In this document: one piece after another, positions 2,476 to 41,171 of the stretch
Layout of the letters: the number at the start of each line of letters is the position of its first letter
How positions within the stretch are numbered: the first letter of the stretch is position 1
IMG/VR virus record: IMGVR_UViG_3300042889_001272
Location: 1-64,000 of that record
Strand: one strand, 5' to 3'
DNA length: 64,000 nt
Translations under genes and position numbers: made by a program
Notes under the pieces: generated by a model
Told to the model about the DNA's origin: nothing
The model's database searches: none
The model's input: the letters and a program-made list of their open reading frames with translations, nothing else

Positions 2476-3021
2476 TTAAATAGTTTCTTCCCAAGGTCCA
2501 GGAAACAATCTTATTAAGATCATGATCCTAGTCTGATCACCATTATTGACAACTCTGTGCGGAGTTTTTACTCCCAATATGTATGGCTCATATGTTTCAG
2601 CTTCATATATTAGTTCACACTGGTCTTCGGTGTATCTAAAATATTGATGAGTCTTACCCTTATTGTTTACTTTGGCAATGGTATAATCAGAGTTTACTTT
2701 AAAAAAATTAATCCAAGTATTTTCACAGCCGATTATTGGTATATTTAAACTATGTTTAAAAGGACCACTGTCCATGTGATAAGTGCCGGCGTCTTTTCCA
2801 ACGGTTACGTTGACAGCAATCGAACCCACTGAATCGAACATTTTTTTACTTTTTAAAAAATCGCGTAGTGCGGCAACTTTGAGAAATATTTCTCTATTAT
2901 TTTCTATATAAGTTAATGTTGTTTTATCAAGTAAATATTCAGGTATTAATTTTAATACTTCTTGTTGTATCTCGTTGAGATTTTCAATGTGTACGGGTTT
3001 ATAAAAATCAGCAGTGTTCAT
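2476..3021 (-). CDS. Fe(II)/2OG-dioxygenase-like (AspH-type DSBH) protein
   Basis: YHMD...LNIP...PHRV...R motif pattern. Confidence 0.7.
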   Translation of the reverse strand: MNTADFYKPVHIENLNEIQQEVLKLIPEYLLDKTTLTYIENNREIFLKVAALRDFLKSKKMFDSVGSIAVNVTVGKDAGTYHMDSGPFKHSLNIPIIGCENTWINFFKVNSDYTIAKVNNKGKTHQYFRYTEDQCELIYEAETYEPYILGVKTPHRVVNNGDQTRIMILIRLFPGPWEETI

Positions 3022-3027
3022 AAAAAG

Positions 3028-3045
3028 TATTTATACCTATAAATA
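3028..3045. promoter_or_regulatory. Back-to-back T4-late-like promoters (TATAAATA on both strands)
   Basis: tatttata 3028-3035 lies 6 nt before the minus-strand ATG; tataaata 3038-3045 lies 5 nt before the plus-strand ATG. Confidence 0.65.
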
Positions 3046-3050
3046 TAATT

Positions 3051-3590
3051 ATGCAATTTATCAAACTTAATAAAAAATTTGATGTTAGTAGTTTTACAGA
3101 AACATCACTGATCAACGAATATGCCATCAATGGCAAGGGCATTGGATTCTATAACATCGACAATTACAATAAAGAATTGATGCTTTCAGTTATACCAGAG
3201 AGATTTAGAAAAGATTTCTTTGCAAGAGAAATGAAAATAAATTATAACATTCCTCCTCATACAGATAGCTACGTGTATGCTACTATAAATTTTTATGTCA
3301 AAGCCGTTGATTGCCAAACAAATTTCTTTAAGAAAGTAGATGCTAGCCTTGGAGTTAAAATGACCACTCAGACTACTGGCAGGACATTTAAAGAAGAAAA
3401 TTTAGAACACGCTGGAAGTTTTGTAGCAGAATCTGGAGATGCTTGGTTATTGGATGTGTCTAGCCCACACAGCGTTAAGAATCTAAAATCTAGTACTGTT
3501 GACAGAGTTGCTCTGGTATTACAATCAAGTAACTATACCTTTGATCAAGTACACAGTATGTTACAAGAAACTGGTTACGTCGACGATTAG
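3051..3590 (+). CDS. Fe(II)/2OG-dioxygenase-like protein
   Basis: PHTD...INFY...PHSV...R. Confidence 0.7.
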   Translation: MQFIKLNKKFDVSSFTETSLINEYAINGKGIGFYNIDNYNKELMLSVIPERFRKDFFAREMKINYNIPPHTDSYVYATINFYVKAVDCQTNFFKKVDASLGVKMTTQTTGRTFKEENLEHAGSFVAESGDAWLLDVSSPHSVKNLKSSTVDRVALVLQSSNYTFDQVHSMLQETGYVDD

Positions 3591-4138
3591 ATTATAAATT
3601 CCTGCAATCTAAGTTTCGCTTCTGCCATAGTAAGTCTTTTTTTTGTTATTAAATCAACCAATACCACAGTAATGCATAAACGATCTTCTTTTGTAGTAGT
3701 TACATTATGCGGACATCCTGCTTGCACTAAACTAGGATAACTCAATGGGCTACTTTCCGCCAAGTCGACCATATCTGATCTCCATGGTATATATTCGGTA
3801 TTGATCGGTGTTTTTTCTACTACGGCGGGCGCGGAAGATGTTTCTTTTACTTTATACCAATGCATTAGACTGCCGTGGCCGCCGTATATAAAGTTTATTT
3901 TAACGTAATCACCGCCCATGCAGTCTGTGTGGATTCCTTGTTTACTTAGGTTGGCATACGGACGAGAATAAAATGATTCCATGTACCAAATTTGTATGCC
4001 AAGATTTTTTAAAAAATTAATAAAATCAGGATTTATATTTTCATGATCAATGGGAGTTTGATATTTCTTTTTCAACTCGAGATGATCTATGATCGCTGGA
4101 TTAATATTTAAATTTAAATATACGTAATAATCGGACAT
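3587..4138 (-). CDS. Fe(II)/2OG-dioxygenase-like protein
   Basis: IHTD...KINF...PHNV...R; close paralogue of 32813-33346. Confidence 0.7.
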   Translation of the reverse strand: MSDYYVYLNLNINPAIIDHLELKKKYQTPIDHENINPDFINFLKNLGIQIWYMESFYSRPYANLSKQGIHTDCMGGDYVKINFIYGGHGSLMHWYKVKETSSAPAVVEKTPINTEYIPWRSDMVDLAESSPLSYPSLVQAGCPHNVTTTKEDRLCITVVLVDLITKKRLTMAEAKLRLQEFII

Positions 4139-4157
4139 AACTATATTTAGTCACTAA

Positions 4158-5948: not shown

Positions 5949-7110
5949 TTGTAGTATTGCTAAAATCAGATATAGCACCAATCTTGTACACTAATCTAAA
6001 AACTTTAAATCCAGTGCGAGGACCATTTAAATAAATAGGATCTATTTCTTTTATAAAATTTCTAAAGTCACTTACAATAAGATCAAAAGTTCTAGTGTTA
6101 TTGTGCATTTTGTAAAACCAATCATCGTGTTCGCCTAAAAACATGCGTGTGGGCTTATGTCCTTGGAATACTTTTCGGTGAGTCTGAGGATATATGCATG
6201 GTATAATAGCTCTTTCATAGAAACTATGCCTGGTTCTAGATTGTTCCAAAGACTGTATTGGCAATCTAAAATCAAGCATCTTTTCTTTAGCAAAACGGTT
6301 CTCTGGCATGTCTATCCATTTGGCTAATACATGCGCTTGCTTCACTTGCATTTCTGGCATTTCTGGGGCAAAATAAAATAATACATTTTCTACATTTGGA
6401 TACTTGTCCTTGAATGGAGGGCGTTGCACATTTACTGTAAGATCAGACATCATCACATTGACAGTATTATCTGTATCGTAGAACAGATGCGGCTTATCAA
6501 TGCCATACACTATAGCAATCTTCTTACCTTGTTCAGCTAACTGTTTGATATGCAACTGTTTGTCTAAATCATATCTTGCTCCGCTACTAGGATGTATCCA
6601 TTCGCCGCATCTAAAAATCCAGTCATCTGTTTCATAATTTAGTAATGTTTCAAAATAGTCGTTGATGGTGATTTTTACATCAGGATGCTTGCTGTGAATT
6701 TCGTGCATCAATGGCATCTGTGCCAGCATTGTTTCACTCATTGTATTACCAGCACTGGTATCTTTGTTGGTTTCAGTCCACTGTGATAAGCCACTGATAG
6801 GAGCACTGGCTACTACTTCATCAACTAATATACCGTTGTTCAAAAAGCTCCATATCACATTGGTGCTATCACCACCACCACTGCACAGGATCACTACATA
6901 ATCATATTGATCCCTGATCTGCTGTGCTCTAAGTTTGTAATACTGATCGAGACTGAGTTCCGGTTCAGTAGTCCAATCAGTGCGGCTATATATCTCATCA
7001 TTAAAATGCCATTCTATTTCTTCTTTAGTTAGACTCGCGTCAAGCACGGCAGCTAATTTATCAGAAAATACTTTATTTCCTACGGTGTAATATCCGGTGT
7101 TTGTTTTCAT
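5938..7110 (-). CDS. N-type ATP pyrophosphatase (Asn-synthetase-like) protein
   Basis: SGGGDS PP-loop after a beta-strand; no glutaminase domain. Confidence 0.65.
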   Translation of the reverse strand: MKTNTGYYTVGNKVFSDKLAAVLDASLTKEEIEWHFNDEIYSRTDWTTEPELSLDQYYKLRAQQIRDQYDYVVILCSGGGDSTNVIWSFLNNGILVDEVVASAPISGLSQWTETNKDTSAGNTMSETMLAQMPLMHEIHSKHPDVKITINDYFETLLNYETDDWIFRCGEWIHPSSGARYDLDKQLHIKQLAEQGKKIAIVYGIDKPHLFYDTDNTVNVMMSDLTVNVQRPPFKDKYPNVENVLFYFAPEMPEMQVKQAHVLAKWIDMPENRFAKEKMLDFRLPIQSLEQSRTRHSFYERAIIPCIYPQTHRKVFQGHKPTRMFLGEHDDWFYKMHNNTRTFDLIVSDFRNFIKEIDPIYLNGPRTGFKVFRLVYKIGAISDFSNTTITL

Positions 7111-8378
7111 TCTAAGTAACCTATGTCTTTTCGGTAAGTAAAGTTGTACATTTCAATATTTTCTAAAAACTTGTAAATTCTATCACTTGCTTCCATTCTT
7201 GTTGGTGCAGAACTAGTTATGACACTATTTAAAAGTTTCCTATCTTTATTAAAACTTATATGTATGTCAGGCAATTCCGGCCATAATTGAGGATTGTGGT
7301 GCGGCTCCAACTCTGCAGATCCGTACATGGCCTGAATATTTACGATATTATGATAATCAGAGTTTACGATTCGTAGACATACGGCTTGCTGATCATTATT
7401 TGACACTGGATCTATTTTTGCGCCAGTTGCGGCTTGGTATAACATATTTGAAATACTACACTTGCTGTCAAATGTCATGGCAATTGATTGAAATTCAGGG
7501 TCGCCTGGTCGGACGTTAATTTCAATCACATATACTTTGCCTTCCAAATCCTCCATAATGCCCAGATACAGAATCCCCACATAAGGAGTACCTTGTGATT
7601 TTAAGTAATTTAAAATAGTATCCGCATACTGATGCACTATGGGGTTAATATTAACTGGGGAATAACAACCCATGCTTGCAGTGTTGCTACCTGTGTCGCC
7701 TTCTCCGAACTTTTTATAATCTCTTGCAGAACCGAGATACTCCCAAGAATTCTCATTGCACAGTATGTGATAGGAATACTCACGTTTCCCGGTTATGAAT
7801 TCTTCTACTAGAAAATGCTGATCCAAGAACTGGCCGAACCCTTTCATATACCTGTTCTGCCCAAAAGATTGCAAATTTTCAAATTCTTTATTCACGTTAT
7901 CGTCGGTTATGATGACAGTCTGTAATCCTGCACGCCAGTCTCTTTCAAATTTTAATACCCATGGTCTGGGTATATTAAAAAATACTTCGAACAGTTTACT
8001 TTTATTATATACTCTGGATTTTGCAGTTGGAATATTCAGCTTTTGAAGTAAAGTCTTGCCATGAGCTTTACTCCATTCTAAGAATGATAAATCATAGCTC
8101 GGAGAGCAAGAAGGAATATTTTTTTCTTTTAGGAAATTCTGAAGACGTTGATTTTGTAGATAATTTATAGTAGTCAACCACACCAAATCCACTGGTGTAG
8201 TAGTCAGAAGGTCTATGATTTCGTCCACTGATTTTAGATCCAATGTGGAGTATCTTAATGAAGGTTGTATTGCAGGATTCGCTGTAATATGATAGATATG
8301 TTCTACTTCGTTTTCTTCTAATAATTTTTTAGAAAAAAAGTGTACCCCTGCGTGTGATCCAAATATTGCAATTTTCAT
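7107..8378 (-). CDS. PurD-like ATP-grasp ligase (diverged)
   Basis: LEWSK, EEFITGKREYS, RDYKKFGEGDTGSNTASMGCYSP, GILYLG, EINVRPGDPEFQ and YRKDIG match GAR synthetase motifs. Confidence 0.8.
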   Translation of the reverse strand: MKIAIFGSHAGVHFFSKKLLEENEVEHIYHITANPAIQPSLRYSTLDLKSVDEIIDLLTTTPVDLVWLTTINYLQNQRLQNFLKEKNIPSCSPSYDLSFLEWSKAHGKTLLQKLNIPTAKSRVYNKSKLFEVFFNIPRPWVLKFERDWRAGLQTVIITDDNVNKEFENLQSFGQNRYMKGFGQFLDQHFLVEEFITGKREYSYHILCNENSWEYLGSARDYKKFGEGDTGSNTASMGCYSPVNINPIVHQYADTILNYLKSQGTPYVGILYLGIMEDLEGKVYVIEINVRPGDPEFQSIAMTFDSKCSISNMLYQAATGAKIDPVSNNDQQAVCLRIVNSDYHNIVNIQAMYGSAELEPHHNPQLWPELPDIHISFNKDRKLLNSVITSSAPTRMEASDRIYKFLENIEMYNFTYRKDIGYLE

Positions 8379-8384
8379 AATGTT

Positions 8385-8416
8385 TATAAACGTGTTGGCC
8401 GGCCAACACGTTTATA
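8385..8416. repeat. Perfect 32-bp palindrome (hairpin/terminator-like)
   Basis: tataaacgtgttggcc|ggccaacacgtttata, with no spacer. Confidence 0.85.
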
Positions 8417-8442
8417 CAAGGCCCGGGTTTTTAAATAAGATA

Positions 8443-8739
8443 TTATTCGCCTAATAATTCAACGGTGTTTGTGATACCATTTGATTCATTGTGTCTTATT
8501 CGAGCTACGCTATTAGCGTTTGTCGAGCTCAGTCCTTTAATTTCAAGATAAGCAGCTTCGTCTCGAAATACATAGTTTCTAATAATAGAGTTGGCATTGA
8601 GTTTAGTTTTACTAACGCTCAATAAACCCGGCAAACTTTTAAACCAAGACGCCCATGCGGCATGACCCGCAGGATTTGCATCGCTAAACCATGCCGCATT
8701 GGCTGGCTTTACTGTTGTTACTCTTACTTTATATGACAT
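8443..8739 (-). CDS. Small hypothetical protein (98 aa)
   Basis: Strong SD aaggaga, Ala/Asn/Ser-rich, followed by the palindrome. Confidence 0.75.
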   Translation of the reverse strand: MSYKVRVTTVKPANAAWFSDANPAGHAAWASWFKSLPGLLSVSKTKLNANSIIRNYVFRDEAAYLEIKGLSSTNANSVARIRHNESNGITNTVELLGE

Positions 8740-8761
8740 AAATGTCTCCTTTGATATATTA

Positions 8762-9418
8762 TTATTTATCTAAGTACGTTCTATTTAGCATAGTATGATT
8801 GTGATCCGTAGGTCCCCAGTCGCCGTCTGGGTGAAAGGCAATAACGGTCATACTACTATCAGTAGTACAGAAACGATGTCTTTCTTGTTCAGTTAAACAA
8901 AAGCTAATGCCAGTAACAAGCTCGTCTTCCTTTAAGTTGCCACTATCGCCGTGATGACTAATACCTTTACCGTCTATGACACAGCCTAATCGGATGCTGG
9001 GATGAGTGTGATAAGACTGTGTGATGCCCGGCGGAAAGAACAATAGATTCAAACTAGCGTCTCCCAGCCTAGCAGGATATACCAGTAAACTATCACTACA
9101 ACCGTCAATATAAGTTAATCTGCCCTTGGATTCTACCCAGCCCATAGTATCTGGTACGATGTATCCTAGTCTAACGATTACAAATAGTTTGTCAACGACG
9201 TCGACACTAACAGAGTCTCTTACGCCTAATCCGAAATATTGCCCTTTTTCCAGTGTATGTTTTTTGCCATCAATTGTGATTGTGGCTGTGCCGTAGCTGT
9301 AACCATACACTGAGCAGAATTTACAGAAATCTGGGAACGTGAATTGCTGATTTTCAAACATGTAGCCAGCTGATGGGTACATACTATTGTACAATTCTAA
9401 TTTTTTTCCATCTATCAT
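8762..9418 (-). CDS. Cupin-domain protein
   Basis: HTHPSIRLG...G.G and ERHRF cupin motifs. Confidence 0.7.
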   Translation of the reverse strand: MIDGKKLELYNSMYPSAGYMFENQQFTFPDFCKFCSVYGYSYGTATITIDGKKHTLEKGQYFGLGVRDSVSVDVVDKLFVIVRLGYIVPDTMGWVESKGRLTYIDGCSDSLLVYPARLGDASLNLLFFPPGITQSYHTHPSIRLGCVIDGKGISHHGDSGNLKEDELVTGISFCLTEQERHRFCTTDSSMTVIAFHPDGDWGPTDHNHTMLNRTYLDK

Positions 9419-9438
9419 TGTTGTATAAGCCTTTTTTG

Positions 9439-10350
9439 TTAAACAATATTTAGTTCTAAAAACCTTTTTGTAACACCGGTCTGTGATTTAAGGTGTGCTA
9501 TTAATTCTTTCCACGGAATAAAACACTGACGTTCTTTACGTACAGTACGAACTTCTTTGTACAGCCAATCAATGTTTTCATAGCCACTGAACTTTGGGAA
9601 ATATACCAGATCTTCTCTCCAGTGTTTGGCATACAGCATAGGTTTGATATAATATTCATAGCGCAATACATCATTAATTTTCATGTTATATAACTTAAAT
9701 CCGTTGCCATCGTAATAAACCCAACTGTCTAAAAAGTAATGAAACAAGTCATCATCGATACTGCTGAGGAAATATTCACTGCTATCTCCGAACATGACAA
9801 TCTTACCAGTACGCTCTATTGCATTAAGCGCACGATATCTAGCAATCTCCGGATCATAATAACTTTGATACACATAGTGATTGCCATCTTTTTTATTGGT
9901 TATTAACCACGGATCGTGTAGCACTTGTATTATATCATAGTCCTTGGGTAATTCACTGACAAATATGTGTTGAATGCAATGATTGGCATGTGCATCTAGT
10001 TCGGGCTTCAATGCTTCTATTTCATCTCTGCGAGTGTTGGGATTTATGTTTACAACATTGGCAGTAAATCCCCACTTCTTTTCCAGCATCTTTAAGTTTT
10101 CGTATTCATTTTCGTTGAAGCCATCTAATCTAAGAAAGCTACATTCAAGTGGAATACCCTGCTTTAGAAAACTTACCAGTGCTATTTGACTGTCTAAACC
10201 AGAACTTAGACACAGCATTATTTTGCCGGGATTGTTCAGATAAATGTCACGAGCACGTCTGTCTGATTCTTCTTTTAAATTACCAGCGGGTCTAGTACAG
10301 CTGGTGTGTTCTACGTAGAACTTATTATTCTCATCAAAACCCCAATGCAT
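9439..10350 (-). CDS. N-type ATP pyrophosphatase (Asn-synthetase-like) protein
   Basis: MLCLSSGLDS PP-loop; C-terminal PKFSGYE. Confidence 0.6.
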   Translation of the reverse strand: MHWGFDENNKFYVEHTSCTRPAGNLKEESDRRARDIYLNNPGKIMLCLSSGLDSQIALVSFLKQGIPLECSFLRLDGFNENEYENLKMLEKKWGFTANVVNINPNTRRDEIEALKPELDAHANHCIQHIFVSELPKDYDIIQVLHDPWLITNKKDGNHYVYQSYYDPEIARYRALNAIERTGKIVMFGDSSEYFLSSIDDDLFHYFLDSWVYYDGNGFKLYNMKINDVLRYEYYIKPMLYAKHWREDLVYFPKFSGYENIDWLYKEVRTVRKERQCFIPWKELIAHLKSQTGVTKRFLELNIV

Positions 10351-10352
10351 TG

Positions 10353-11375
10353 TTATCCTTGTATTGGTTGTTTAGTAAATCTGTAAACACCGTTGTCTTC
10401 GTAGATAAAGTCAAATGTATCTTTATAACGTAGCAATGCTGGCAAGCTAGGGTGCTTGGTTTTGTATTTAAAATATTGCAAGTCACCATCTACTTGATAG
10501 ATAAACTTCTTCATGATACCTTTATATTCGCCCCAGCTGGTTCCTTTGAAGTAATGACCTTCTTGTAGACTCCATTGTTGGAATGTATCTGTATTAAAGA
10601 AATGCTTTAAGTTTTTAATTAGTTGATTGCCCACTGCTTCGTTGTTGGCATGGCTTACTATGCGAAAGTTAACTGCCTGCCACTTTAAGTTAAAGTTCAA
10701 GTACCACAGCAAATCATGACAAGTAACCAATTCAACTGGGCTGGTTGAAATTTGTTGTTCTATAAATTCATATAGTTTTGGTTTTTCTTCTGTGGTTAAA
10801 TTTCTAGCCATCCAATCAACTGCCATTTGCAATGGCTTGTGAACAGTGCTAAAGTCATTGAAATAATCTACACAACTTTTCATAGTTAAACTGCCCACCA
10901 AGTTATCTGCCATTTCGCCTGTGATGATAACCTGATCCGGCTTGGGATCAGCAATAATCTTATCAGCTTGTACTACGCATGATATGAATCTATTTTTAAT
11001 AAATTTATTATAAAAGTTTGGATTTTCGCGGATACTGTCCATGTTCAATCCAATGGTCAATCTATTTTGTTTGTATAGTTCGTCGGCAATGCCAAGGTCA
11101 ACCATTAATGCAAAAATAAATGTACTGTCGATGCCGCCACTCCATAACACATTAACATGCATATTATGATCTGTTAATTCTTTAATTCTAGCAATGCTGG
11201 TTGCCATGAAGTCCGGACACGGTGTATCAACACTGGGCATGGGAAACATATTAACGTAATCGAAATTAGGCCAACGATTTGCGGTTCTGTCCAACACACT
11301 GATAAGTGGGTTGATTGTTTTATGAAAGACTTGTTTTTCTTTCAATGCTATGGGATGATAATAAACTAGATTCAT
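10353..11375 (-). CDS. Asparagine-synthetase-like ATP pyrophosphatase
   Basis: VLWSGGIDST, IITGEMADNLVG, HFF...FQQWS, YK...K..I. Confidence 0.75.
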   Translation of the reverse strand: MNLVYYHPIALKEKQVFHKTINPLISVLDRTANRWPNFDYVNMFPMPSVDTPCPDFMATSIARIKELTDHNMHVNVLWSGGIDSTFIFALMVDLGIADELYKQNRLTIGLNMDSIRENPNFYNKFIKNRFISCVVQADKIIADPKPDQVIITGEMADNLVGSLTMKSCVDYFNDFSTVHKPLQMAVDWMARNLTTEEKPKLYEFIEQQISTSPVELVTCHDLLWYLNFNLKWQAVNFRIVSHANNEAVGNQLIKNLKHFFNTDTFQQWSLQEGHYFKGTSWGEYKGIMKKFIYQVDGDLQYFKYKTKHPSLPALLRYKDTFDFIYEDNGVYRFTKQPIQG

Positions 11376-11914
11376 AATAAAATATTTGTAAAGAACAAGC
11401 GTAACATGAGTTCACGAGCATTGACGAAATCATCTGCATTTTTTGCATCGAGTATTGCGGATATAACCTGCGTTTTAATGTTATTTAAATTTTGCATTAA
11501 CTGCATTTTATTCTCGTATTGAATGCCTGCATCAATGGGTGCAGTTCCTGTAATAACACCCTGTGAAACTAGGTATTCATGTAATTCAATAATTGTAAAA
11601 TTAGAATTGCTTATTCCTAGATTCTCCATGCTGGCTTCTAATCTATAATATAACTCTGCAAAGAATTTTAATCTATGCCCTATAATTATAGATTCCCGGT
11701 TGACCTCGGCTGGACTTGTTGCATTAGTATTAACAGTGACACTGGTCCAACTATTTGTTTTTAACTGCATAGGGCAGGATATTGGCGTGTCTATGGTAAA
11801 TGTTCTAAGAGTATACCAAGGACGGTCTTGAATCGCCCAGTGCATTACTTCTTTAATCGAATGCTCGCCTATTACCCAATTATTACTGTCAAGTATTACT
11901 GTTCGCCATTGCAT
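11372..11914 (-). CDS. Hypothetical protein
   Basis: 180-aa ORF coupled to its neighbours within the operon. Confidence 0.65.
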   Translation of the reverse strand: MQWRTVILDSNNWVIGEHSIKEVMHWAIQDRPWYTLRTFTIDTPISCPMQLKTNSWTSVTVNTNATSPAEVNRESIIIGHRLKFFAELYYRLEASMENLGISNSNFTIIELHEYLVSQGVITGTAPIDAGIQYENKMQLMQNLNNIKTQVISAILDAKNADDFVNARELMLRLFFTNILL

Positions 11915-12734
11915 CTTTTCTTGCCTTAAATATTTTTTCTTTGCTGGCCCTAGTTGCTATTAATGGAACAAATAATAAACTAGGATCAAATTCATCTTTG
12001 CGTCCACTGACACTAGTGCCGAAATCATAGGAACTTGCTTTGGCATGATGGTTATTATGCCATGCTTGCCCCCATACAATTTTAGCCATAATCGATCTAT
12101 TGTTGCTGTCATCCTTGGTTTCGAAGTTTCTATACCCCTGTCCTTTTAAATGACATAACACATTTACTGCTGATTCTTGGTGCAGACTATACACTGCTGG
12201 AATTATAAACATAAACAATAATATTTGCCAATCTATTAGTCCGATGATTGCATAACTAATAAAGATAATTTTAATGTAGTTGTGGGCAAAAAACAAATGC
12301 ATGGGATCTTTGAGTAAATCAATGGCATACTTGGGATTAAAATAATTCCCCCAATCATGCAACCAAAAGTGATAAGCATACAATTTTCCTTTGTTGGGCG
12401 TGTGTGCGTCTTTTTCAGTGTCACTGAATCTATGATGACTGCCTCTATGAATTGCGGCCCAACCCAATGGACTTCCTTGCAAGCACAAACTTGCTGTCCA
12501 CAATGCAATGGGTTTGATTCCTGGTCGCAATTCCAAGGCACGATGGCTGACAATACGATGCAATGTCACAGCACTTCCGAACCCAGCAAGTAGAATCCAG
12601 CCCGCAAATAATAATAGTATTTGTTTTAATCCAAAATCAAAGTAAAAAGGAAATACAAATACGCCCAGCAATGCAACAATATGTGCAGGGTAAAGGACGT
12701 AGTAAAGGAAATTGTTAATTTTTGGTGTATTCAT
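11889..12734 (-). CDS. Membrane fatty-acid desaturase (delta-9-like)
   Basis: His boxes HRIVSH, HRGSHH, WHNNHH; transmembrane segments. Confidence 0.9.
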   Translation of the reverse strand: MNTPKINNFLYYVLYPAHIVALLGVFVFPFYFDFGLKQILLLFAGWILLAGFGSAVTLHRIVSHRALELRPGIKPIALWTASLCLQGSPLGWAAIHRGSHHRFSDTEKDAHTPNKGKLYAYHFWLHDWGNYFNPKYAIDLLKDPMHLFFAHNYIKIIFISYAIIGLIDWQILLFMFIIPAVYSLHQESAVNVLCHLKGQGYRNFETKDDSNNRSIMAKIVWGQAWHNNHHAKASSYDFGTSVSGRKDEFDPSLLFVPLIATRASKEKIFKARKDAMANSNT

Positions 12735-12735
12735 A

Positions 12736-13350
12736 TTAAAGGAAATCTATGTCTCGCTCATCAAACTCAACTGAGCCCTCTGATGTACACAAACTCTTCG
12801 ACATGTACATACTGATATTTATATCGTAAGGAAACAATTTTCCGCCACTAAACTGTAAGTGATCCAACCATTTTGGCATTGTATTTGCTGCCACTCTGGC
12901 ATAAACATAGTGATGATATTTTTCTCTGGCACCAGTGAAAAGTTTTTGCCATGCATCAAACTTTTCTAATTTGCTGACAACAAACCATTGATAAAATCCA
13001 CTTTTTTCCTGATAATCAATAGCAAATTTTAAAAGTTCTTTTATAACCCTGATGCTATTGCCACCGCGATGTGCAGTCACAATAAAACTAAAAATCCAAG
13101 AAGGACTGTTGTCTAAACAACGTAGTCCTATAATAGCAATTAATTTTGAATCTTCATCAAAATATCCAAATGCTCTCATTTTATCAGAACCATAGACATT
13201 CTGCGGTAGCACAAAATATTTAAACACCTTTGAGTTTGTATTGTCTTCGAAAATGCCAGAAGCAGTATTAGTCATAGCAAACTTTTCTTCTGCCATGGCT
13301 TCAATCATACTCAAGTCTTCTTGTAATAATCTTCTTATATATATTGACAC
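12736..13350 (-). CDS. Putative GNAT-fold acyltransferase
   Basis: Beta-hairpin (AFGYFD...LIAIIGL), then HRGG..IRVIKELLKFAI, which resembles motif A. Confidence 0.45.
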   Translation of the reverse strand: MSIYIRRLLQEDLSMIEAMAEEKFAMTNTASGIFEDNTNSKVFKYFVLPQNVYGSDKMRAFGYFDEDSKLIAIIGLRCLDNSPSWIFSFIVTAHRGGNSIRVIKELLKFAIDYQEKSGFYQWFVVSKLEKFDAWQKLFTGAREKYHHYVYARVAANTMPKWLDHLQFSGGKLFPYDINISMYMSKSLCTSEGSVEFDERDIDFL

Positions 13351-14258
13351 ACTGTTCCTTGATTTGTTAAAATATCTATCATATCATTGTAAGAAATATA
13401 AGCATTTCTTGGTTTGAATTGTAATGTTTGTTGTATCAATTCTGAATTCTTTTGATTTAAACCAGGTATATGATCACCGCTGACTGTTTTAACAAACTTG
13501 AAAGTATTTCCATCAAATAAGTTTGTAAAACCTCCTTGATAATAAATTAAATTCTTTAAACTGTTTAAAGAAATTTTTCCGCTGGTTTGTTTTTTCACTA
13601 ATTCCCGTATTACGGGAAGAGTTAAAAAACTATATATTAATTCTGGACTGTATGAGAAGAAATTGTTAATAACTTTATTCTCATTAAAACTATTAAACCG
13701 CTCAGGCCAAAAATCAAAATCTTCATTGCGAATATAGCTCCAAGATAAGTCTGGATTCACATCTCTTCGAAGATTTACTTTATCAACTAATAACACATCC
13801 TCATGTAGTTGCTCCATATAATATGCATGTAAAGTTTGAACAAAACTGTACGTTTGATATTTTTTTGCAGTATCTATCATGTGCTCGTTTACAAACGTTT
13901 CAAAATTCACGTCGACTAATTTAGGTATAATATTATATTTTTTACACTGTTTTACTGCAATCTCGGTGTCATGGGAATTTAATCTAATGGGAAATTTTAA
14001 AATATATACATTTGGAGTAATGCCGGCTTCAATAAACGAGCGTAAACAAATTTGACTTTCCCATCCGCCCGACAATGCAATGTATATGTTGGGATATTTT
14101 AAATGTATTTCTTTGGCAGCAATTATACATTCTTCTTTCAAAGTCAATTCCTGTCTAGTTTTCGAGCTAATCTTAAGGTTGAGAATCTCAAGAGCTGTTG
14201 TCCTAAATTTATTACCAACATCATCGCCATACCAATAGTCTAAATTTTTCATTATCAT
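13335..14258 (-). CDS. N-type ATP-pyrophosphatase-like protein with variant PP-loop
   Basis: IALSGGWESQ (D replaced by E); similar layout to 9439-10350. Confidence 0.55.
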   Translation of the reverse strand: MIMKNLDYWYGDDVGNKFRTTALEILNLKISSKTRQELTLKEECIIAAKEIHLKYPNIYIALSGGWESQICLRSFIEAGITPNVYILKFPIRLNSHDTEIAVKQCKKYNIIPKLVDVNFETFVNEHMIDTAKKYQTYSFVQTLHAYYMEQLHEDVLLVDKVNLRRDVNPDLSWSYIRNEDFDFWPERFNSFNENKVINNFFSYSPELIYSFLTLPVIRELVKKQTSGKISLNSLKNLIYYQGGFTNLFDGNTFKFVKTVSGDHIPGLNQKNSELIQQTLQFKPRNAYISYNDMIDILTNQGTVCQYI

Positions 14259-14263
14259 TGTAT

Positions 14264-14863
14264 TTAATTTATAATTCCACTTTGATTTACAATTACACGG
14301 TTTGTCATATTTCTAATCCATGTTTCGTTGCCTAGATTGGTTAAATGATGTACAGCAACATATTGGATACAGCCTTCTTGCTCGTCATATGTATGCCCAC
14401 AGACATTATATCTATTTGGTTTTATATTAAAGTCTAAATCACAATTAATTTTAATTAAATCGATGTATTGTTTAAATCCGATTAAGTTATATTCTCTGCT
14501 TATGAAGACAGCATCGAGACCGACTTCCTTGGCCTTGTTTATCTGCACAGGTAAACAATATGTGGAGTTTAAAAACTTTGCACCGCCAGTAAACTTACCA
14601 ATGCCTTTTATTCTATAATCAGGATGTATCCACATTCTACTGCTAAATCGTGCAATTCCTTGGCCCCAGCGACGCTCATTATAATGCAGGCCACTGAAGC
14701 AAATTATTTTGTTATTCTCAACTACCGCCGGGAAACTCAAAAATTCATTAAATTTAATATTAGTATAATTACTCTTAAGTCGATCATCGGTGCCACTGAT
14801 ATAATCAATGGTATCTTTCCATAGTTGATCTTGTGGAGCAACAACTAAATCAATGACTTGCAA
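14264..14863 (-). CDS. Putative GNAT acetyltransferase
   Basis: IICFSG...IARFSSRMWIHPDYR...KAKEVGLDAVFIS. Confidence 0.55.
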   Translation of the reverse strand: MQVIDLVVAPQDQLWKDTIDYISGTDDRLKSNYTNIKFNEFLSFPAVVENNKIICFSGLHYNERRWGQGIARFSSRMWIHPDYRIKGIGKFTGGAKFLNSTYCLPVQINKAKEVGLDAVFISREYNLIGFKQYIDLIKINCDLDFNIKPNRYNVCGHTYDEQEGCIQYVAVHHLTNLGNETWIRNMTNRVIVNQSGIIN

Positions 14864-14864
14864 T

Positions 14865-15761
14865 TTATTTCTGCCAGGAGTTGAAAATATTCATACGATA
14901 AAACTCTCTAGATTTAGTATGAAGTTCACTGTGCAATGCTGTTCTAGAATGAATCATATGCACATTATTCCAAATAGCAAAGTCTTGTTCATCCCATGTT
15001 AAATCGTAGATGTTTTCATCTTGAATTGTTTTTTCATGAAGCAAACTCACATAGTCAGCAGTACATGGAACTTCATCACGTTTGGCGCCAAATATCCAAC
15101 CATGCACAGTCCAACCATGCCAATGATGACTGTATTTTTTACCGCTGTTACTGAAGCTGGTGAACTGCAAATACTTTTCACCGTTGTATGGACTAACAGC
15201 AACTACAGGAAGATAAGTCAAGTGTGTGCCCGGTTCGTACCAACTTTGATACAACAGTTTCCAGTGTTCTGCTTCTGCTTGTTCTTCATCAGTCATATTT
15301 CTATAACCCCAGGCACGGTCAGCAAAACTAGTTTTGCCATAACGATTGTCTGGAATACTCACAGCATAAAAACTGCGTAATGGTGCTTGGTGACTTGGCC
15401 ACAACGGAATATCAACATGCCAGCTCATATCAGCATCACCAATGGCCTTTGCAGTACTGCCTACATTGCTGTAATGAGCATAGACTCTTCCACTGGCATC
15501 ATCTATAGGAAAACATTTTTCTTTTCCTACTTCGTAGTCTTCTCTAGTCCAGCCGCCTTGGCCAAAGCGTGTGCTAAAGTCCCAAAACTGTACATTATTA
15601 ATATTTTTCATACCTTTAATGACTAGTAATTTGTCTTGATATACCCATGCATCTAATTGTTCTTTGGGTATAGACATGGCTTCTTCATAACTGTCTACAT
15701 GAACAATTATGCCATAGTGCAGGGCTGTGCCGGCGCGAGATGTTAATTTTTCAGTACGCAT
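14865..15761 (-). CDS. TauD/TfdA-family Fe(II)/2OG dioxygenase
   Basis: LLVIKG, WHVD, GKTSFAD, W...DFAIWNN...HSR...R. Confidence 0.85.
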   Translation of the reverse strand: MRTEKLTSRAGTALHYGIIVHVDSYEEAMSIPKEQLDAWVYQDKLLVIKGMKNINNVQFWDFSTRFGQGGWTREDYEVGKEKCFPIDDASGRVYAHYSNVGSTAKAIGDADMSWHVDIPLWPSHQAPLRSFYAVSIPDNRYGKTSFADRAWGYRNMTDEEQAEAEHWKLLYQSWYEPGTHLTYLPVVAVSPYNGEKYLQFTSFSNSGKKYSHHWHGWTVHGWIFGAKRDEVPCTADYVSLLHEKTIQDENIYDLTWDEQDFAIWNNVHMIHSRTALHSELHTKSREFYRMNIFNSWQK

Positions 15762-17553: not shown

Positions 17554-17558
17554 ATAAG

Positions 17559-17589: not shown

Positions 17590-17594
17590 CAAAT

Positions 17595-26910: not shown

Positions 26911-26974
26911 AAATGTATTCTAGTTACAGTTATTTATATTTCATAATGTTAAATAAAGCACAACCGAGGAATAT

Positions 26975-32248: not shown

Positions 32249-32818
32249 ATGAATATCAGTCTACGTAAAGCCAGTGTATTGCAGAACAGCATCAATGATG
32301 CTGTCAAAGGCATTGACCTCAAAGGTCAAGTTACACTAACAGAATTCCATGCTCCGATCATGGAAATTGACAAGGCCACAACTGTGTTTAAAACTAATTT
32401 GAATCGTCGCGATTCTTTGGTTAAAGCACTGTATGACATCCGTAAGCAAGTCAGTGCAGTTAACAGTCGTGTGGGCATAGATGACAAACTCACAGAGATT
32501 GCTGGTCTTGAAAAGCAAATTCAGAACTATACAGAGTTGTCTGGCTTTGCAGTTCGCGAACAAGAAGCAGTTGTGCTGGGCAAGTTGGATAAGATTAAAA
32601 ATCGTAAAGAAGAAGGTCGCAGTATCTATGGTTACGAAAGCACAGTAGCCACTAGTGTGTTCACAGAAGAAGACATCAAGGGCTTTAAAGTTTTTGTAAA
32701 TCTAGCCAAGAAAGCCAAACAACGTCTTCAAGACGAAGTTCTAGAATTGAATGTGCGTACTGACATCGGTCTAAGTGTAGACACAGTTCAAACATTGAAG
32801 TCAGAAGAATTATTATAA
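32249..32818 (+). CDS. Coiled-coil protein, DIP1984-family-like
   Basis: N-terminal MNISLRKA..LQ, helical hairpins with ...AVN... and LQDEVLELNVRTDI endings, resembling the DIP1984-family layout. Confidence 0.5.
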   Translation: MNISLRKASVLQNSINDAVKGIDLKGQVTLTEFHAPIMEIDKATTVFKTNLNRRDSLVKALYDIRKQVSAVNSRVGIDDKLTEIAGLEKQIQNYTELSGFAVREQEAVVLGKLDKIKNRKEEGRSIYGYESTVATSVFTEEDIKGFKVFVNLAKKAKQRLQDEVLELNVRTDIGLSVDTVQTLKSEELL

Positions 32819-33346
32819 GTATTGTTTGAACATTTCAATTGATTCTGCCATAGTTAATCTAGTATTATCTTGTTTTTTTAATACTAAACTTAGGCAGTAT
32901 CTAGGTTCTTCAAAATTATGTATGTTATGAGGAATACCAACTTGAACTATACTAGGAAAATTTACTGGCTGTTTATCGATTAAGTCAACTTGGTCTATCT
33001 TGTAATCAATATAAGAACTATTGAGTGCGTTGAGTTCTGCACTATTCGATATATTAGGTTTTTGTTTCCACCAATACATTAAACTGTTTTTGCCGCCGAA
33101 TACATAATTGAGTTTGATATAATCTCCGCCTGTGTCATCGAGATGTATTGTACTAAAACGAAAAGGAAGATTGTAAAATAATTCTACTCGGCCAATGGTT
33201 AGATTTAAAGTTTTTAAAAATAAAATTAAATCATTGTTAATATCGTCAATTGATATTTTAATATGATTGTGTGTGCCATATGAGTTTATATTTAAATCTT
33301 CTCTCAGAGGATTTATGTCTAGATTTATATTAAGACTGTTAATCAT
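32813..33346 (-). CDS. Fe(II)/2OG-dioxygenase-like protein
   Basis: IHLD..GGDYIKLNY...GIPHNI...R. Start moved to ATG 33346, which avoids the tRNA and sits 5 nt from ATAAATA. Confidence 0.7.
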   Translation of the reverse strand: MINSLNINLDINPLREDLNINSYGTHNHIKISIDDINNDLILFLKTLNLTIGRVELFYNLPFRFSTIHLDDTGGDYIKLNYVFGGKNSLMYWWKQKPNISNSAELNALNSSYIDYKIDQVDLIDKQPVNFPSIVQVGIPHNIHNFEEPRYCLSLVLKKQDNTRLTMAESIEMFKQYL

Positions 33347-33358
33347 AAATATATTTAT

Positions 33359-33434
33359 CGCGGGGTACGTCAGTTGGTAGACTATCAGGCTCATAACCTG
33401 GAAGACGGAGGTTCGAGTCCTTCCCCCGCAACCA
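33359..33434 (+). tRNA. Initiator-type tRNA-Met(CAT)
   Basis: cgcgggg/ccccgca with C1:A72 mismatch, ctCATaa loop, ACCA. Confidence 0.88.
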
Positions 33435-38446: not shown

Positions 38447-38490
38447 TCAAATTTATCTTCTGATGACTTGTGCATCTATATAAATATTGT

Positions 38491-39189
38491 ATGAGATCAT
38501 CGGAAGATAAAGAATTACTAGTGTCTAGATTCACTGATACTATCTATGTAGAAGAATTTCTCCAGCCTGAAGAAATCCAGTATCTAGTCCAACTGTTTGA
38601 TAACTCAAACGACAAAATTTATAAGAACACCGGACCCGTGACTTCTAATTCTATTATGAAAGATTCTATTTTGGAATCTATAGTAGAAAGACTCAGACCT
38701 TTAATTGGTGATTTTAAGATTTATTCTGCGGCATTCTTTAATGTAAAAACGCCGCATATCATACACAATGATGATGAGAAGTCATTTCCTTTGACTTATA
38801 AAGCAATTACATTGCCATTGAAATTAGAGTATTCTGTGGTCTCTACAGAGCTACCCAGTCTGTGTATCTTTGATCAGTATTACTTGGAAGGCCCGAGTAA
38901 ATTTTTTAATGGCTCCAATGATATTCCCACATATTATAATCAACAAATCTACGAATACTCCGAAGTACAAAACAAATCTTCAACCGGTATCAGGGTAGAT
39001 GACATACAGAGATATCTAACACATATAAAACCAAATTGGTTACATGGACTTAGTTTAAATTCAATACATGCATGGAAGCCAGGATCTGCAATTATATTCG
39101 ATGCATTAAAACTTCATTGTGCCAGCGACTTTAGACAGCACAGCATTATCAGCAAACTGGGCATTAGTATTTTTACATACACTGATTAA
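38491..39189 (+). CDS. Fe(II)/2OG-dioxygenase-like protein
   Basis: IHND...LPL...WKPGSAIIFD...LHCA...K; TATAAATA 4 nt before the ATG. Confidence 0.65.
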   Translation: MRSSEDKELLVSRFTDTIYVEEFLQPEEIQYLVQLFDNSNDKIYKNTGPVTSNSIMKDSILESIVERLRPLIGDFKIYSAAFFNVKTPHIIHNDDEKSFPLTYKAITLPLKLEYSVVSTELPSLCIFDQYYLEGPSKFFNGSNDIPTYYNQQIYEYSEVQNKSSTGIRVDDIQRYLTHIKPNWLHGLSLNSIHAWKPGSAIIFDALKLHCASDFRQHSIISKLGISIFTYTD

Positions 39190-39191
39190 TT

Positions 39192-39803
39192 TTACAAAAA
39201 TAAAATTTTACTGTCGTTGACATTTTTTGCGGCATCTTCATAGTCTTGGAATTCTTTTATGTAGGTAAGGTCAAACAAAAGACTTGTTCTTTTACCTACA
39301 TAATTATCCACTGCATGTATAGCCGAATTATTAATCAGATACCATTTGTTAAGATCGAATCTATATCGATTTATTTCTGTCAATTCACTTTTTTCAAACA
39401 TTCTAGCAGCCACGGTATTATTAATATCCTTTTGTTTGTAAAATACAGTATCAGCCGCGCCTTCTACTACATAGATTATACTCATCTTTCTAAAGGTATC
39501 TGTATGTGGCGGCAGTTCGTTGATACTTCGTTGCAGTGTTATATATTCTAAAAATTTTCTATTAATTTTATGACCATGAAAAATCTCATCAAGGAAATTC
39601 ATATGCTCTGGCCATTTCTGCAATTGATACGATCCGGCCGTTTCAACTAAAAAATCATCCTGAACCATACTTTTGCCCTGTTCTATTCTTTTGAACCTTT
39701 TTCCATAATGCTTGTACTGTTCATAATGCTTGATTATTTTTTCAGAGACTTCTATCCCCAATGGTGGCCAGTTTAACTCAATGGCATTGTTCATATAAAT
39801 CAA
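39192..39803 (-). CDS. Fe(II)/2OG-dioxygenase-like protein
   Basis: PPHTD..R...WYLIN...IHAV...R. Confidence 0.7.
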   Translation of the reverse strand: MIYMNNAIELNWPPLGIEVSEKIIKHYEQYKHYGKRFKRIEQGKSMVQDDFLVETAGSYQLQKWPEHMNFLDEIFHGHKINRKFLEYITLQRSINELPPHTDTFRKMSIIYVVEGAADTVFYKQKDINNTVAARMFEKSELTEINRYRFDLNKWYLINNSAIHAVDNYVGKRTSLLFDLTYIKEFQDYEDAAKNVNDSKILFL

Positions 39804-40516
39804 TGCCCGTGTTTAAGATTTGCAATCAATTTAGATACATTGTCAGTGGTAAACGGTACGTTGAGAATCAGATGTATGCTGTTGTCAACCCAACTAATTG
39901 TTCTATGTGTTCGTCTAGTGTTGATGTAATAAGCTCGGCCTTCTTCAATTTGGAGTTTTGTATCGGCACCGATTATCCAGTCATAGTCATAAGTCCCACA
40001 ATGTTTTAAAAACACTGCGATTCTAAATGTTTCTCTTGGTATTTCAGGATGGTCTCTGTGTGGAGTAAAATATCCGCCTATGTTACTTTTTACTAAAAAT
40101 GTTCTGCCCAATGGAGAGAATGTATCCAATAAAGGATGTAAACTGGGACAATTTTGATAAACTGCTGTGTGATGAGAAAACTCTTTCTCAAATACTTTTC
40201 TGCCGGCAGCATGACTGGCCTGTGCTTGGCTGGGATTATCCTGATGTGTTTTGCCTTCGAGGTTAGTAATTGCTAGACCTTTTCTATTATTAAGTCTATC
40301 TGCTCTTGGCAAATAATCTACCCAGTCGTTGTCAAATTTTGCAATTTCACGATTGAACTGCCCCGGATCTATAAAAAAGTTTAAAGATTCAAAGTCTCCC
40401 AGTGTTAATAATGCCAATTCATCTGTGACAGTTTCTTGGCTAATTGCGGCGCTGTTATATTTGGTAGGTCTTCTCACAGCATGTTTTTTACCTACAATAA
40501 TATTTTTGTCATTCAT
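39800..40516 (-). CDS. AspH-like dioxygenase
   Basis: GGYFTPHRD...FRI...GRAYYINT...HRT...HLILN. Confidence 0.72.
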   Translation of the reverse strand: MNDKNIIVGKKHAVRRPTKYNSAAISQETVTDELALLTLGDFESLNFFIDPGQFNREIAKFDNDWVDYLPRADRLNNRKGLAITNLEGKTHQDNPSQAQASHAAGRKVFEKEFSHHTAVYQNCPSLHPLLDTFSPLGRTFLVKSNIGGYFTPHRDHPEIPRETFRIAVFLKHCGTYDYDWIIGADTKLQIEEGRAYYINTRRTHRTISWVDNSIHLILNVPFTTDNVSKLIANLKHGH

Positions 40517-40655
40517 ATTATAATTTATTATCTCTATTCAGAATACAAGATACACATTACGATAAATCAATGTCAATCTCACCGATACCGCCTGCAAAAG
40601 CCTGTTATTGCGATAAACGACATTGGAGATTCGGCTACCTTGAATAAATATCAGT

Positions 40656-41171
40656 ATGCATATACAGTTTAAATCAATTTACCCTAAATTCAAAGAAGTA
40701 TTGGATCAATGTATATATCTAGGCAAAGAATACGCTGATTGGCCGAATAACGAAGAAGGCCAGTTAGCTATTCAAACAGATGATCCAAATATAGATAACT
40801 GGACTTCTGGAATAGGAAAAAGTGTTGCAAAAACTCCCGAGTGGGAGCAACAATTTAGATATATTCAACCAAGTTTAATTGGCACGCCTGTAGATAGATA
40901 TATCAAATGGCTGGGTATTCCCGTTTATCGAACAAGAATTATGTTATCTAAATCTAAATCTTGTTACAGTGTTCATCGTGATTACAGTCCAAGATTGCAT
41001 CTCCCGTTGATAACTAATAAGCAATGCAATTTTTTAATTACAGATCCCATACAGTTTTTTCATTTGCCAGCCGATGGCAGAACAACTTGGGTAAACACAA
41101 CCATGCCCCATACTTTCATGAATGGCAGTTTAGAAAATAGATTACATCTAGTAATGATAACAAAGGAATAA
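40656..41171 (+). CDS. AspH-like dioxygenase
   Basis: RTRIM...CYSVHRD...RLHLPLITN...PADG...HTFMN...RLHLV. Confidence 0.78.

Follow-up and report, generated by a model that had tools for sequence, protein, structure and literature searches.

The question raised by the first 64 kb of the 235,561-bp virus contig IMGVR_UViG_3300042889_001272 (positions 1 to 64,000, referred to here as the window) is what should be made of 22 small open reading frames (ORFs), lying on both strands between positions 2476 and 41171, which an initial annotation had taken for an expansion of paralogues resembling Fe(II)/2-oxoglutarate (2OG) dioxygenases. The answer that we consider likely is that they constitute a battery of small (171–263 residues), soluble, single-domain Fe(II)/2OG oxygenases, belonging to old, separately maintained subfamilies and housed for the most part in an exchangeable cassette. 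In such proteins a double-stranded beta-helix (DSBH) core would carry an HxD motif on one strand and a distal His 45–117 residues later, while an Arg (Lys in one family), another 9–13 residues along where the next strand begins, would bind the C5 carboxylate of 2OG. If the usual chemistry of the family applies, each enzyme would bind Fe(II) and 2OG, the 2OG would be decarboxylated to succinate and CO2 with formation of an Fe(IV)-oxo species, and this would then hydroxylate, or otherwise oxidise, a C–H bond of the enzyme's own substrate. Such action may take place inside the infected cell, and the substrates might be small molecules (amino-acid-like compounds, whether free or activated) or else the side chains of proteins or peptides.

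All 22 ORFs are indeed present at or near the starts originally given, although at three of these (17595, 18359 and 38491) the ATG given is internal and the ORF reaches a little further upstream, to 17568, 18326 and, with GTG, 38470; for the second of the three, the family alignment favours 18359, as in the initial annotation. The spacing of HxD...H...R on which that annotation was founded is also real, since 20 of the 22 carry HxD...H...R/K, against 2.4 expected in shuffled sequences. Taken residue by residue, the HxD is found in 21 ORFs, as is a distal His 45–117 residues downstream, and a basic residue follows this His at +9 to +13 in 20 (Arg in 19, Lys at +13 in 38491); in 17568 the Arg may be read at +13 or at +19, owing to an insert. 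The remaining cases are 15751, rightly called degenerate at the outset, in which H, D, H and R are all lost, and 39800, which retains the HxD and the distal His but lacks any basic residue between +6 and +14. Used as a regular expression, H.D.{40,140}H.{8,13}R matches 20/22 candidates (2.4/22 when these are shuffled) and 6/68 of the genome's other ORFs of 150–270 residues; of these six, two are genuine 2OG oxygenases. Matching ORFs at 46553, 122638 and 223773 were rejected as such, being unlike 2OG oxygenases by eye and matching none of the group hidden Markov models (HMMs); 46553–47059 (plus strand, 168 residues) looks by eye like a protein of the QueD/6-pyruvoyl-tetrahydropterin-synthase type, its match having arisen by chance. 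The count of 22 is itself slightly low, in that the genome holds three further 2OG-type genes, namely a TauD gene within the window, missing from the original list, and, outside it, 150096–150836 (PF05118, E = 1.4e-10) and 134665–135414 (PhyH, E = 4.4e-16), giving a total of about 25. The paralogues appear to be soluble, no 19-residue Kyte–Doolittle window exceeding 1.63 and no hydrophobic segment being present.

The source is an uncultivated lake-water jumbo myovirus. Its contig has 38% G+C and a CheckV completeness of 66%, and completeness estimates for related IMG/VR fragments imply genomes of about 350 kb. The DNA polymerase is of T4 type, with nearest relatives in jumbo myoviruses of the Rak2/GAP32/CBB and Atu_ph07/Phosso types at only 41–48% amino-acid identity; a megablast search of the array region (15–28 kb) against 50,697 phage records returned no cultured relative, and many lake-water metagenomes contain DNA near-identical to the window region. 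The relatives used for comparison are the close relative IMGVR_UViG_3300027772_000009 (G004), a more distant 142-kb record (G001), a 21.4-kb stretch of which is called L004, a 54-kb record (G002), and other related jumbo-phage loci (L005, L007 and L022).

Grouping by all-against-all BLAST and phmmer, extended by ORFs from related IMG/VR loci, indicates that the 22 ORFs are several deep subfamilies, not one simple family. Ten of them belong to group A, defined by a length of about 180 residues, by invariant H, D, N (at +10), W, H and R, and by being virus-borne; six belong to group B and two to group C, and four are single types. Profiles of groups A and B find 13 matches in the 142 kb of G001 and 9 in the 54 kb of G002. 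The 22 are listed here with the evidence for their placement (A1 and A2 being family alignments, of which A1 comprises 25 group A sequences):

2476..3021, minus strand: group A, 181 residues; H82-x-D84, H155, R165; in A1; phmmer to 20789, 1.4e-8; G004 orthologue 97.8% identical
3051..3590, plus strand: group C, 179 residues; H70-x-D72, H140, R152; group A HMM 1.3e-5; related to 39192
3587..4138, minus strand: group A, 183 residues; H70, D72, N82, H144, R153; modelled
15751..16359, minus strand: group B without metal ligands, probable pseudo-enzyme, 202 residues; phmmer to 16930, 2e-4
16349..16930, minus strand: group B (AspH/Cpz10-like), 193 residues; H93-x-D95, H146, R156; phmmer to 16930, 5.5e-22; in A2
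16930..17553, minus strand: group B, 207 residues; H102-x-D104, H154, R164; PF05118 at 22.6 bits, exactly the gathering cut-off; in A2
17568..18359, plus strand: group B with inserts, 263 residues; H169-x-D171, H235; tied to group B through L005:11462-12046 and its row in A2; L004 orthologue 73% identical
18326..18898, plus strand: group A, probable start 18359, 190 residues; H78-x-D80, H151, R160; phmmer to 32813, 1.4e-21, and to 3587, 1.7e-19; in A1
18895..19653, plus strand: group A with a C-terminal extension, 252 residues; H84-x-D86, H159, R172; phmmer to 3587, 1.5e-12; in A1
19650..20228, minus strand: group A, 192 residues; H76-x-D78, H162, R171; phmmer to 21389 and 2476, about 1e-5; in A1
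20230..20799, minus strand: group A, 189 residues; H77-x-D79, H156, R165; tied in through L007:4997-5572 (3.7e-20), which itself matches 3587, 18895 and 32813; in A1; no orthologue in L004
20789..21382, minus strand: group A, 197 residues; H93-x-D95, H167, R176/R177; phmmer to 2476, 1.7e-8; PF05118 sub-threshold at 16.5 bits; group B HMM 1.6e-3
21389..21976, minus strand: group A, 195 residues; H72-x-D74, H163, R174; phmmer to 19650, 5.5e-6; in A1
23475..24185, plus strand: own subfamily related to group A, 236 residues; H104, D106, N126, H205, R215; modelled
25661..26287, minus strand: group D, probable member only, 208 residues; H130-x-D132, H179, R192
26284..26910, minus strand: group A with inserts, 208 residues; H74-x-D76, H168, R179; phmmer to 18895, 1.2e-3, and to L005:9357-9914, 4.9e-5; in A1; two copies in L004
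27334..27987, minus strand: group B, the clearest AspH-family member, 217 residues; H148-x-D150, H196, R206-x-H208; PF05118 E = 2.2e-17, 63.8 bits; first row of A2
32813..33394, minus strand: group A, 193 residues; H84-x-D86, H156, R165; in A1
38491..39189, plus strand: group E, probable member only, 232 residues; H92-N-D94, H209, K222
39192..39794, minus strand: group C, 200 residues; H97-x-D99, H160, R169; group A HMM 3.9e-3, group B HMM 1.3e-3
39800..40516, minus strand: group F, 238 residues; H153-x-D155 and H204 retained, no canonical Arg; group B HMM 1.8e-5
40656..41171, plus strand: group B, 171 residues; H107-x-D109, H152, R162-x-H164; PF05118 at 23.1 bits, over the cut-off

The kinship of 3587 and 32813, already remarked upon in the initial annotation, amounts to 38.5% identity over 179 residues (E = 6e-36). 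A Pfam suggestion that 20230 might be an Ntox24 or Imm70 protein was dismissed as noise, since the matches (E = 0.05–0.09) score far below the cut-offs. As for the two ORFs with incomplete motifs, alignment A2 places S and H where the H and D of the HxD should be in 15751, and G in place of the distal H, with no R. Its orthologue at L004:16533-17150 (46% identity, E = 8e-55) is likewise degenerate, and the fact that the protein has been kept without ligands in a distant relative suggests a retained non-catalytic role; on its sequence, 15751 would be a conserved non-catalytic remnant. In the case of 39800 the canonical Arg is absent from 7/7 homologues, so that this protein appears to possess a non-canonical 2OG site.

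Structure prediction, which had been named at the outset as a check on the fold, bears out the DSBH assignment for the two paralogues modelled. The AlphaFold2 models of 3587 (made with alignment A1) and 23475 (with alignment A3) have predicted local distance difference test (pLDDT) scores of 94 and 91 respectively, and both are double-stranded beta-helices of the beta-sandwich kind. Among the 50 best PDB neighbours of each, 49 or all are Fe/2OG oxygenases, including the protein hydroxylases AspH, PHD2, NO66 and vCPH. In both models DSSP puts the HxD at a strand and an invariant Asn on the strand that follows, and two successive strands further along carry the distal His and the Arg respectively; this order, in these predicted structures, is the canonical layout of a 2OG oxygenase. 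The facial triad HxD...H is present by sequence in 21/22 and is invariant in the family alignments. The near-twins found in BFVD and the ESM Atlas, at template-modelling (TM) scores of 0.87–0.91, are unnamed proteins of uncultured phages, and the next neighbours are viral PF13759, PF13640 and PF05118 clusters at 0.54–0.64.

In A1, the invariant columns other than Met are H70, D72, N82, H144 and R153 (numbering of 3587), and the corresponding five residues H104, D106, N126, H205 and R215 are invariant across 16 homologues of 23475. Profile–profile comparison with hhalign joins group A to the 23475 family at 80–90% probability, A to C at 91–94%, B to F (39800) at 91%, A to B at 44% and B to C at 46%, and these joins put the catalytic residues in register. 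For 25661 the hhalign links are weak (15% to the 39800 family, 8% to a deep group A profile) and no related loci were found in viral contigs, but its HxD, H and SIR.DG are conserved in its three homologues and its Atlas look-alikes include PF05118 clusters at 0.95. For 38491 there is no Pfam, PDB or hhalign link even with a deeper profile, Pfam gave noise only on 38 members of its family, and no Pfam domain occurs in the best 120 listed proteins; yet H92-N-D94, H209 and K222 are invariant in 38 homologues (alignment A5). Its Atlas look-alikes are DUF6445 and 2OG-FeII_Oxy_3 proteins at 0.93–0.95, and the top one has PhyH and 2OG-FeII_Oxy_3/5 proteins as structural neighbours (TM 0.57–0.64); the language-model and structural look-alikes of 25661 and 38491 together are viral PF05118, DUF6445, PF13640 and PF13759 clusters.

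Two of these families are large. Among 1.84 billion representatives, group A accounts for 3619 clusters at E ≤ 1e-3 when these are drawn at 50% identity, every name found for its homologues being "hypothetical protein"; at 90% identity the 38491 family comprises more than 1051 clusters, from both freshwater and Tara marine metagenomes. Of 20 ORFs scanned against PHROGs, 19 have no family and 27334 falls into one unnamed family; tblastn of 3587 and of 38491 against the 50,697 phage records gave nothing, and that of 27334 one weak match, in a Limnohabitans phage. PDB sequence searches with the profiles of group A and of the 38491 family also returned nothing. Three metagenomic homologues of group A (P0043, P0044 and P0170; 375, 388 and 556 residues, with 2–3 matched stretches) are tandem fusions of two or three domains.

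It is group B that provides a link to characterised enzymes. The gathering cut-off of PF05118 (Asp_Arg_Hydrox), 22.6 bits, is reached by 27334 (63.8), 40656 (23.1) and 16930 (22.6), and outside the window by 150096–150836 (41.7), but not by the other 19 of the 22, the best of which is 20789 at 16.5; 16349, 17568 and 15751 enter the AspH-like group through the group B profile alone. LpxO has membrane anchors, and no anchors of that type are found in the proteins of this phage. Against the PDB, the group B profile finds Cpz10 (7V4F) at 1.4e-17, L-proline cis-4-hydroxylase (4P7W) at 5.7e-9 and proline 3-hydroxylase (1E5R) at 1.7e-3, whereas human AspH scores only E = 0.85. Cpz10, the alpha-ketoglutarate-dependent beta-hydroxylase of caprazamycin biosynthesis (7V4F/7V4M; PMC9814697), is like group B a single-domain AspH-like protein, of 182 residues; its ligands are H115, D117 and H160, with R170 binding 2OG (PMC9814697), and the HxD, H and RxH of group B align to H115, D117, H160, R170 and H172. 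The likeness has limits: identity is low, group A has no sequence match to Cpz10, and Cpz10, encoded in a nucleoside-antibiotic cluster of an actinomycete, has an aminoacyl-glycyluridine as its substrate, genes of such a pathway not being recognised in the phage. The proline hydroxylases 1E5R and 4P7W, which act on free proline, are 290 residues long and have extra helical elements, unlike the small phage enzymes. Even so, with the two models, the conserved motifs and this link of group B to Cpz10 and the proline hydroxylases, the original assignment to DSBH proteins of Fe(II)/2OG-oxygenase type stands. Since Cpz10 and the free-amino-acid hydroxylases are the nearest solved relatives, we lean, with low confidence, towards the tailoring of small molecules or peptides in the infected cell.

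As to how the repertoire arose, the initial annotation had envisaged a diversifying set in which each member acts on a different residue or substrate. Identity between paralogues of the window does not exceed 38%. A tree built from 171 group A sequences sets every window copy closest to a sequence of some other phage (P0007 in the case of 3587, for example, at 62%, and P0060 in that of 32813, at 47%), and where window copies join one another they do so through long branches. Because of this placement the repertoire is better regarded as a set of old subfamilies, and a recent diversifying burst is contradicted. The ratio of non-synonymous to synonymous substitution (dN/dS) between orthologues is 0.08–0.24, as measured with unsaturated dS in relatives 63–97% identical at the protein level (dS was saturated for most pairs with L004, and those ratios were left unused), which argues for purifying selection rather than for the arms-race signature that this comparison might have revealed. 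The part of the proposal concerning substrates fares better: diversity is high, with paralogues ≤38% identical and catalytic residues alone invariant in group A, a pattern that fits different substrates.

The repertoire does differ between near-identical phages. G004 is colinear with the window at 87–96% DNA identity over 330–4675, 5335–5957 and 27333–42183 (with a few short gaps, and with greater divergence, 76–79%, at 29.5–31.7 kb), but the 21.4 kb at 5958–27332 is swapped in G004 for a different 13.3 kb, where the 2OG-like genes are no more than distant relatives (about 30%) and a further desaturase is encoded. Smaller differences lie at 4676–5334, where G004 has two ORFs, one of them group-A-like, in place of an AAA_33 kinase gene, and at 34689–35392, where a Methyltransf_24 gene is absent from G004; the cassette breakpoints are at gene boundaries. 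The more distant G001 retains the window's version of the island in synteny. On sequence comparison, then, this appears to be a 21-kb cassette exchanged as a block between closely related phages. Besides paralogues, the island also contains TauD, a cupin, two B12-radical-SAM (S-adenosylmethionine) genes, a desaturase, PP-loop-like genes, an ATP-grasp gene, GNATs and speD. The island and the principal genes in and around it are as follows:

5958..27332, no strand: replaceable island of 21.4 kb, from blastn breakpoints against G004; 14/22 paralogues inside
4205-4672, plus strand: dual-specificity-phosphatase-like gene (DSPc sub-threshold; PF22785 over cut-off)
4831-5331, plus strand: AAA_33 P-loop kinase
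5346-5948, plus strand: calcineurin-like phosphoesterase
5938-7110, 9439-10350, 10353-11375 and 13335-14258, all minus strand: genes with an SGGxDS-type PP-loop motif (by eye), with no Pfam match
8762-9418, in the window: Cupin_2 protein
11889-12734 (minus strand), 35514-36293 (plus strand) and 36290-37045 (plus strand): three paralogous membrane fatty-acid desaturases, 31–35% identical to one another (PF00487 tested for 11889 only)
14865..15761, minus strand: TauD/TfdA-family 2OG dioxygenase, 298 residues (PF02668, E = 1.7e-16, 61.4 bits)
22001-23446 and 24180-25664, both minus strand: B12-binding radical SAM paralogues, flanking 23475
26975-27337, plus strand: speD (S-adenosylmethionine decarboxylase; PF02675, E = 1.3e-14), at the right edge of the island

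Further neighbours of the paralogues are a PurD-like ATP-grasp gene, GNATs and a methyltransferase. Radical SAM genes form a second large expansion, mainly outside the window (143000–181000 of the contig): PF04055 has 17 matches in the genome, 16 of them over the cut-off, mostly in one minus-strand cluster at 146–166 kb, one ORF, of 851 residues, has two domains, and phmmer unites 16 ORFs of the genome, among them 1441–2391 in the window, as one radical SAM paralogue family. The AspH-like gene 150096–150836 lies within this cluster. On an unrelated 358-kb contig, a homologue of group A is again found among radical SAM, PhyH, aminotransferase and desaturase genes.

It must be remembered that several observations weigh against the interpretation of the paralogues as a battery of 2OG oxygenases. 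Fe/2OG-dependent hydroxylation is something that we infer from sequence and from two models; the latter cover 2/22 paralogues, and the triad was read from sequence. Foldseek taken alone gives TM scores of only 0.3–0.47 to PDB chains, a generic cupin similarity in which 2OG oxygenases are mixed with RmlC-like epimerases and seed globulins. Group A has no sequence match in Pfam, PHROG or PDB, its link to group B by hhalign is just 44%, and 25661 and 38491, which are placed by motif and look-alikes alone, count as probable members only. The preference for small molecules is a weak one, drawn solely from the nearest solved relatives. Finally, although contigs from four freshwater metatranscriptome runs (four studies) include pieces 92–98% identical to 38491, 39192, 39800 and 40656, so that relatives of this phage are present in RNA libraries (fragments of window 38000–41500), such contigs may come from contaminating DNA and lend weak support to expression.

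Several other explanations have to be set against this one. In the initial annotation the enzymes were thought to hydroxylate virion surface proteins, a different residue each, and thereby to mask the particle in an arms race with the host, and it is true that the main array lies in a cassette differing between near-identical phages, as arms-race loci often do, and that protein hydroxylases (AspH, PHD2, NO66, vCPH) are among the structural neighbours. However, the array does not adjoin structural genes, its neighbours being metabolic and tailoring enzymes; dN/dS of 0.08–0.24 offers no sign of gene-level positive selection; the paralogues are ancient subfamilies that occur in different phages; and the group B profile prefers small-molecule hydroxylases (Cpz10 at 1e-17) far over AspH (E = 0.85). 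With no link to virion or surface proteins found, with soluble proteins, and with the closest solved relatives of group B acting on small molecules, surface masking has become very improbable. Nor do we give much credence to a main role in consuming 2OG and producing succinate so as to reset host carbon and nitrogen signalling during infection. Uncoupled turnover is common among 2OG oxygenases and could contribute to such a sink, but one efficient enzyme would suffice, whereas here there are more than 20 divergent ones in which only catalytic residues are conserved, and nothing was found that connects this lake phage with cyanobacteria, the proposal having been made for the 2OG oxygenases and PhyH proteins of cyanomyoviruses (PMC3037559). 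Repair or modification of nucleic acids, by AlkB-type demethylases or TET/JBP-type base hydroxylases, seems scarcely more than a slim chance either: none of the 22 ORFs matches a Pfam model of the AlkB or TET/JBP type, AlkB hits are no better than those to many other 2OG oxygenases, and the proteins are minimal DSBH domains of 170–200 residues. Least probable of all, in our estimation, is that most of them are non-catalytic, cupin-fold binding proteins that merely resemble oxygenases. The conserved 15751 and its orthologue, which have lost every ligand, the lack of Arg in 39800 and the non-oxygenase cupins returned by Foldseek are what one might expect on that basis, but the full HxD...H...R/K is retained in 20/22, and the invariant columns of group A, the 23475 family and group E are the catalytic residues, across sequences 14–40% identical, which is a signature of retained catalysis.

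An unlikely but more serious alternative, which overlaps with the oxygenase battery rather than excluding it, is that the enzymes, in concert with the radical SAM enzymes, the PP-loop-like and ATP-grasp ligases, the GNATs, methyltransferases and desaturases, carry out tailoring steps of one or more phage-encoded pathways whose product might be a peptide of the ribosomally synthesised and post-translationally modified (RiPP) kind, a modified metabolite, a lipid or a hypermodified nucleotide. Co-location with TauD, the cupin, the two B12-radical-SAM genes, the PurD-like ATP-grasp gene, the four PP-loop-motif genes, GNATs and SpeD points in this direction, as do the genome's 17 radical SAM matches, whose cluster encloses an AspH-like gene, the same gene company on the unrelated 358-kb contig, and the fact that Cpz10, closest among the solved relatives, serves to tailor a natural product. 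On the other hand, neither a precursor peptide nor a core scaffold enzyme or a transporter could be recognised, the genes are spread over the two strands in no obvious operon arrangement, and more than 20 hydroxylases go far beyond any known single pathway. Rather speculative, and on balance doubtful, is an extension of this idea in which the cassette and the 16-gene radical SAM cluster would together be a phage-borne combinatorial tailoring system, its hydroxylases, radical SAM enzymes, ligases, acyltransferases, methyltransferases and desaturases building or decorating a phage-specific peptide, lipid, hypermodified nucleotide or metabolite. Were that true, a swap of the cassette would change the chemistry, the cassette would be a diversifying viral biosynthetic locus, and group A would constitute a new clade of minimal 2OG hydroxylases, one that is specific to viruses and acts on a substrate class of its own.

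Few "auxiliary" genes of aquatic phages are as common as those for small 2OG oxygenases, and their presence in multiple copies in aquatic myoviruses is already known. Cyanomyoviruses mostly carry 1–5 copies (PMC3037559), but expansions to some two dozen have been reported: the T4-like cyanophage S-SCSM1 has 24 2OG-Fe(II) oxygenase genes from four Pfam families, with mutual identity ≤44% (PMC9602691). Like the phage studied here (highest mutual identity 38.5%, against 44%), it is a large aquatic myovirus with about two dozen small (about 180–250 residues), divergent genes of this kind, and cell-wall or metabolic auxiliary genes together with speD occur in genomes of the cyanophage system and in the present one alike. 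The families differ, those of S-SCSM1 being PF13640, PF13661, PF13759 and PF05721, none of which any of the 22 matches at E ≤ 0.1, whereas here they are PF05118-like or have no model; and the present phage is of a freshwater lineage whose DNA polymerase has its nearest relatives in jumbo phages of the Rak2/Atu_ph07 type and not in cyanophages. In pelagimyophages an AspH-like gene belongs to the core and a variable region contains radical SAM cassettes, while those from freshwater have a polyamine gene and a stearoyl-CoA desaturase (PMC7029224); a single PF05118 gene is common in aquatic myoviruses, against six or seven in this phage. The Arctic sea-ice viral operational taxonomic unit S16N20, in which 27 kb contain nine genes for 2OG-Fe(II) oxygenases besides three tauD genes, and with related uncultivated virus genomes from freshwater and ice (PMC13436968), is likened here by description: it too is an uncultivated Caudoviricetes contig with a dense, non-identical 2OG-oxygenase array accompanied by tauD. 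The functions put forward in the phage papers cited, namely DNA repair and 2OG/nitrogen signalling, are proposals only.

What is new, therefore, is the phage lineage, the family composition (PF05118-like families and families without models) and the documented replacement of a cassette, so that the phenomenon now extends to an unrelated, uncultivated lineage of freshwater jumbo phages. As most copies belong to families that neither Pfam nor PHROG models recognise, Pfam-based counts of 2OG oxygenases in phages are too low. The replacement between phages 87–96% identical in the flanks provides a natural comparison for enzyme function, and the substrates, if found, would address a long-standing question of phage ecology.

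Some minor observations on the neighbouring genes may be added. The two B12-radical-SAM genes at 22001 and 24180 are 50% identical to one another, and with 76–85% identity to their L004 orthologues they are better conserved than the neighbouring 2OG paralogues (35–73%). A desaturase also accompanies the group A homologues on L004, L005, L007 and L022, and phmmer links the PP-loop genes 5938, 9439 and 13335 with 121420, 132217 and 133429 outside the window. The speD gene, a known auxiliary gene of cyanomyoviruses, is absent from G004, and the phosphatase-like, kinase and phosphoesterase genes occupy the interval that separates the island from the first three 2OG paralogues. Lastly, the stretch at 28000–32000, with Lys/Glu-rich ORFs at 29596–30759 and 30764–31711, has a G+C fraction of 0.417 against 0.35–0.38 around it and is the most diverged part of the colinear flank relative to G004, at 75–80% DNA identity.

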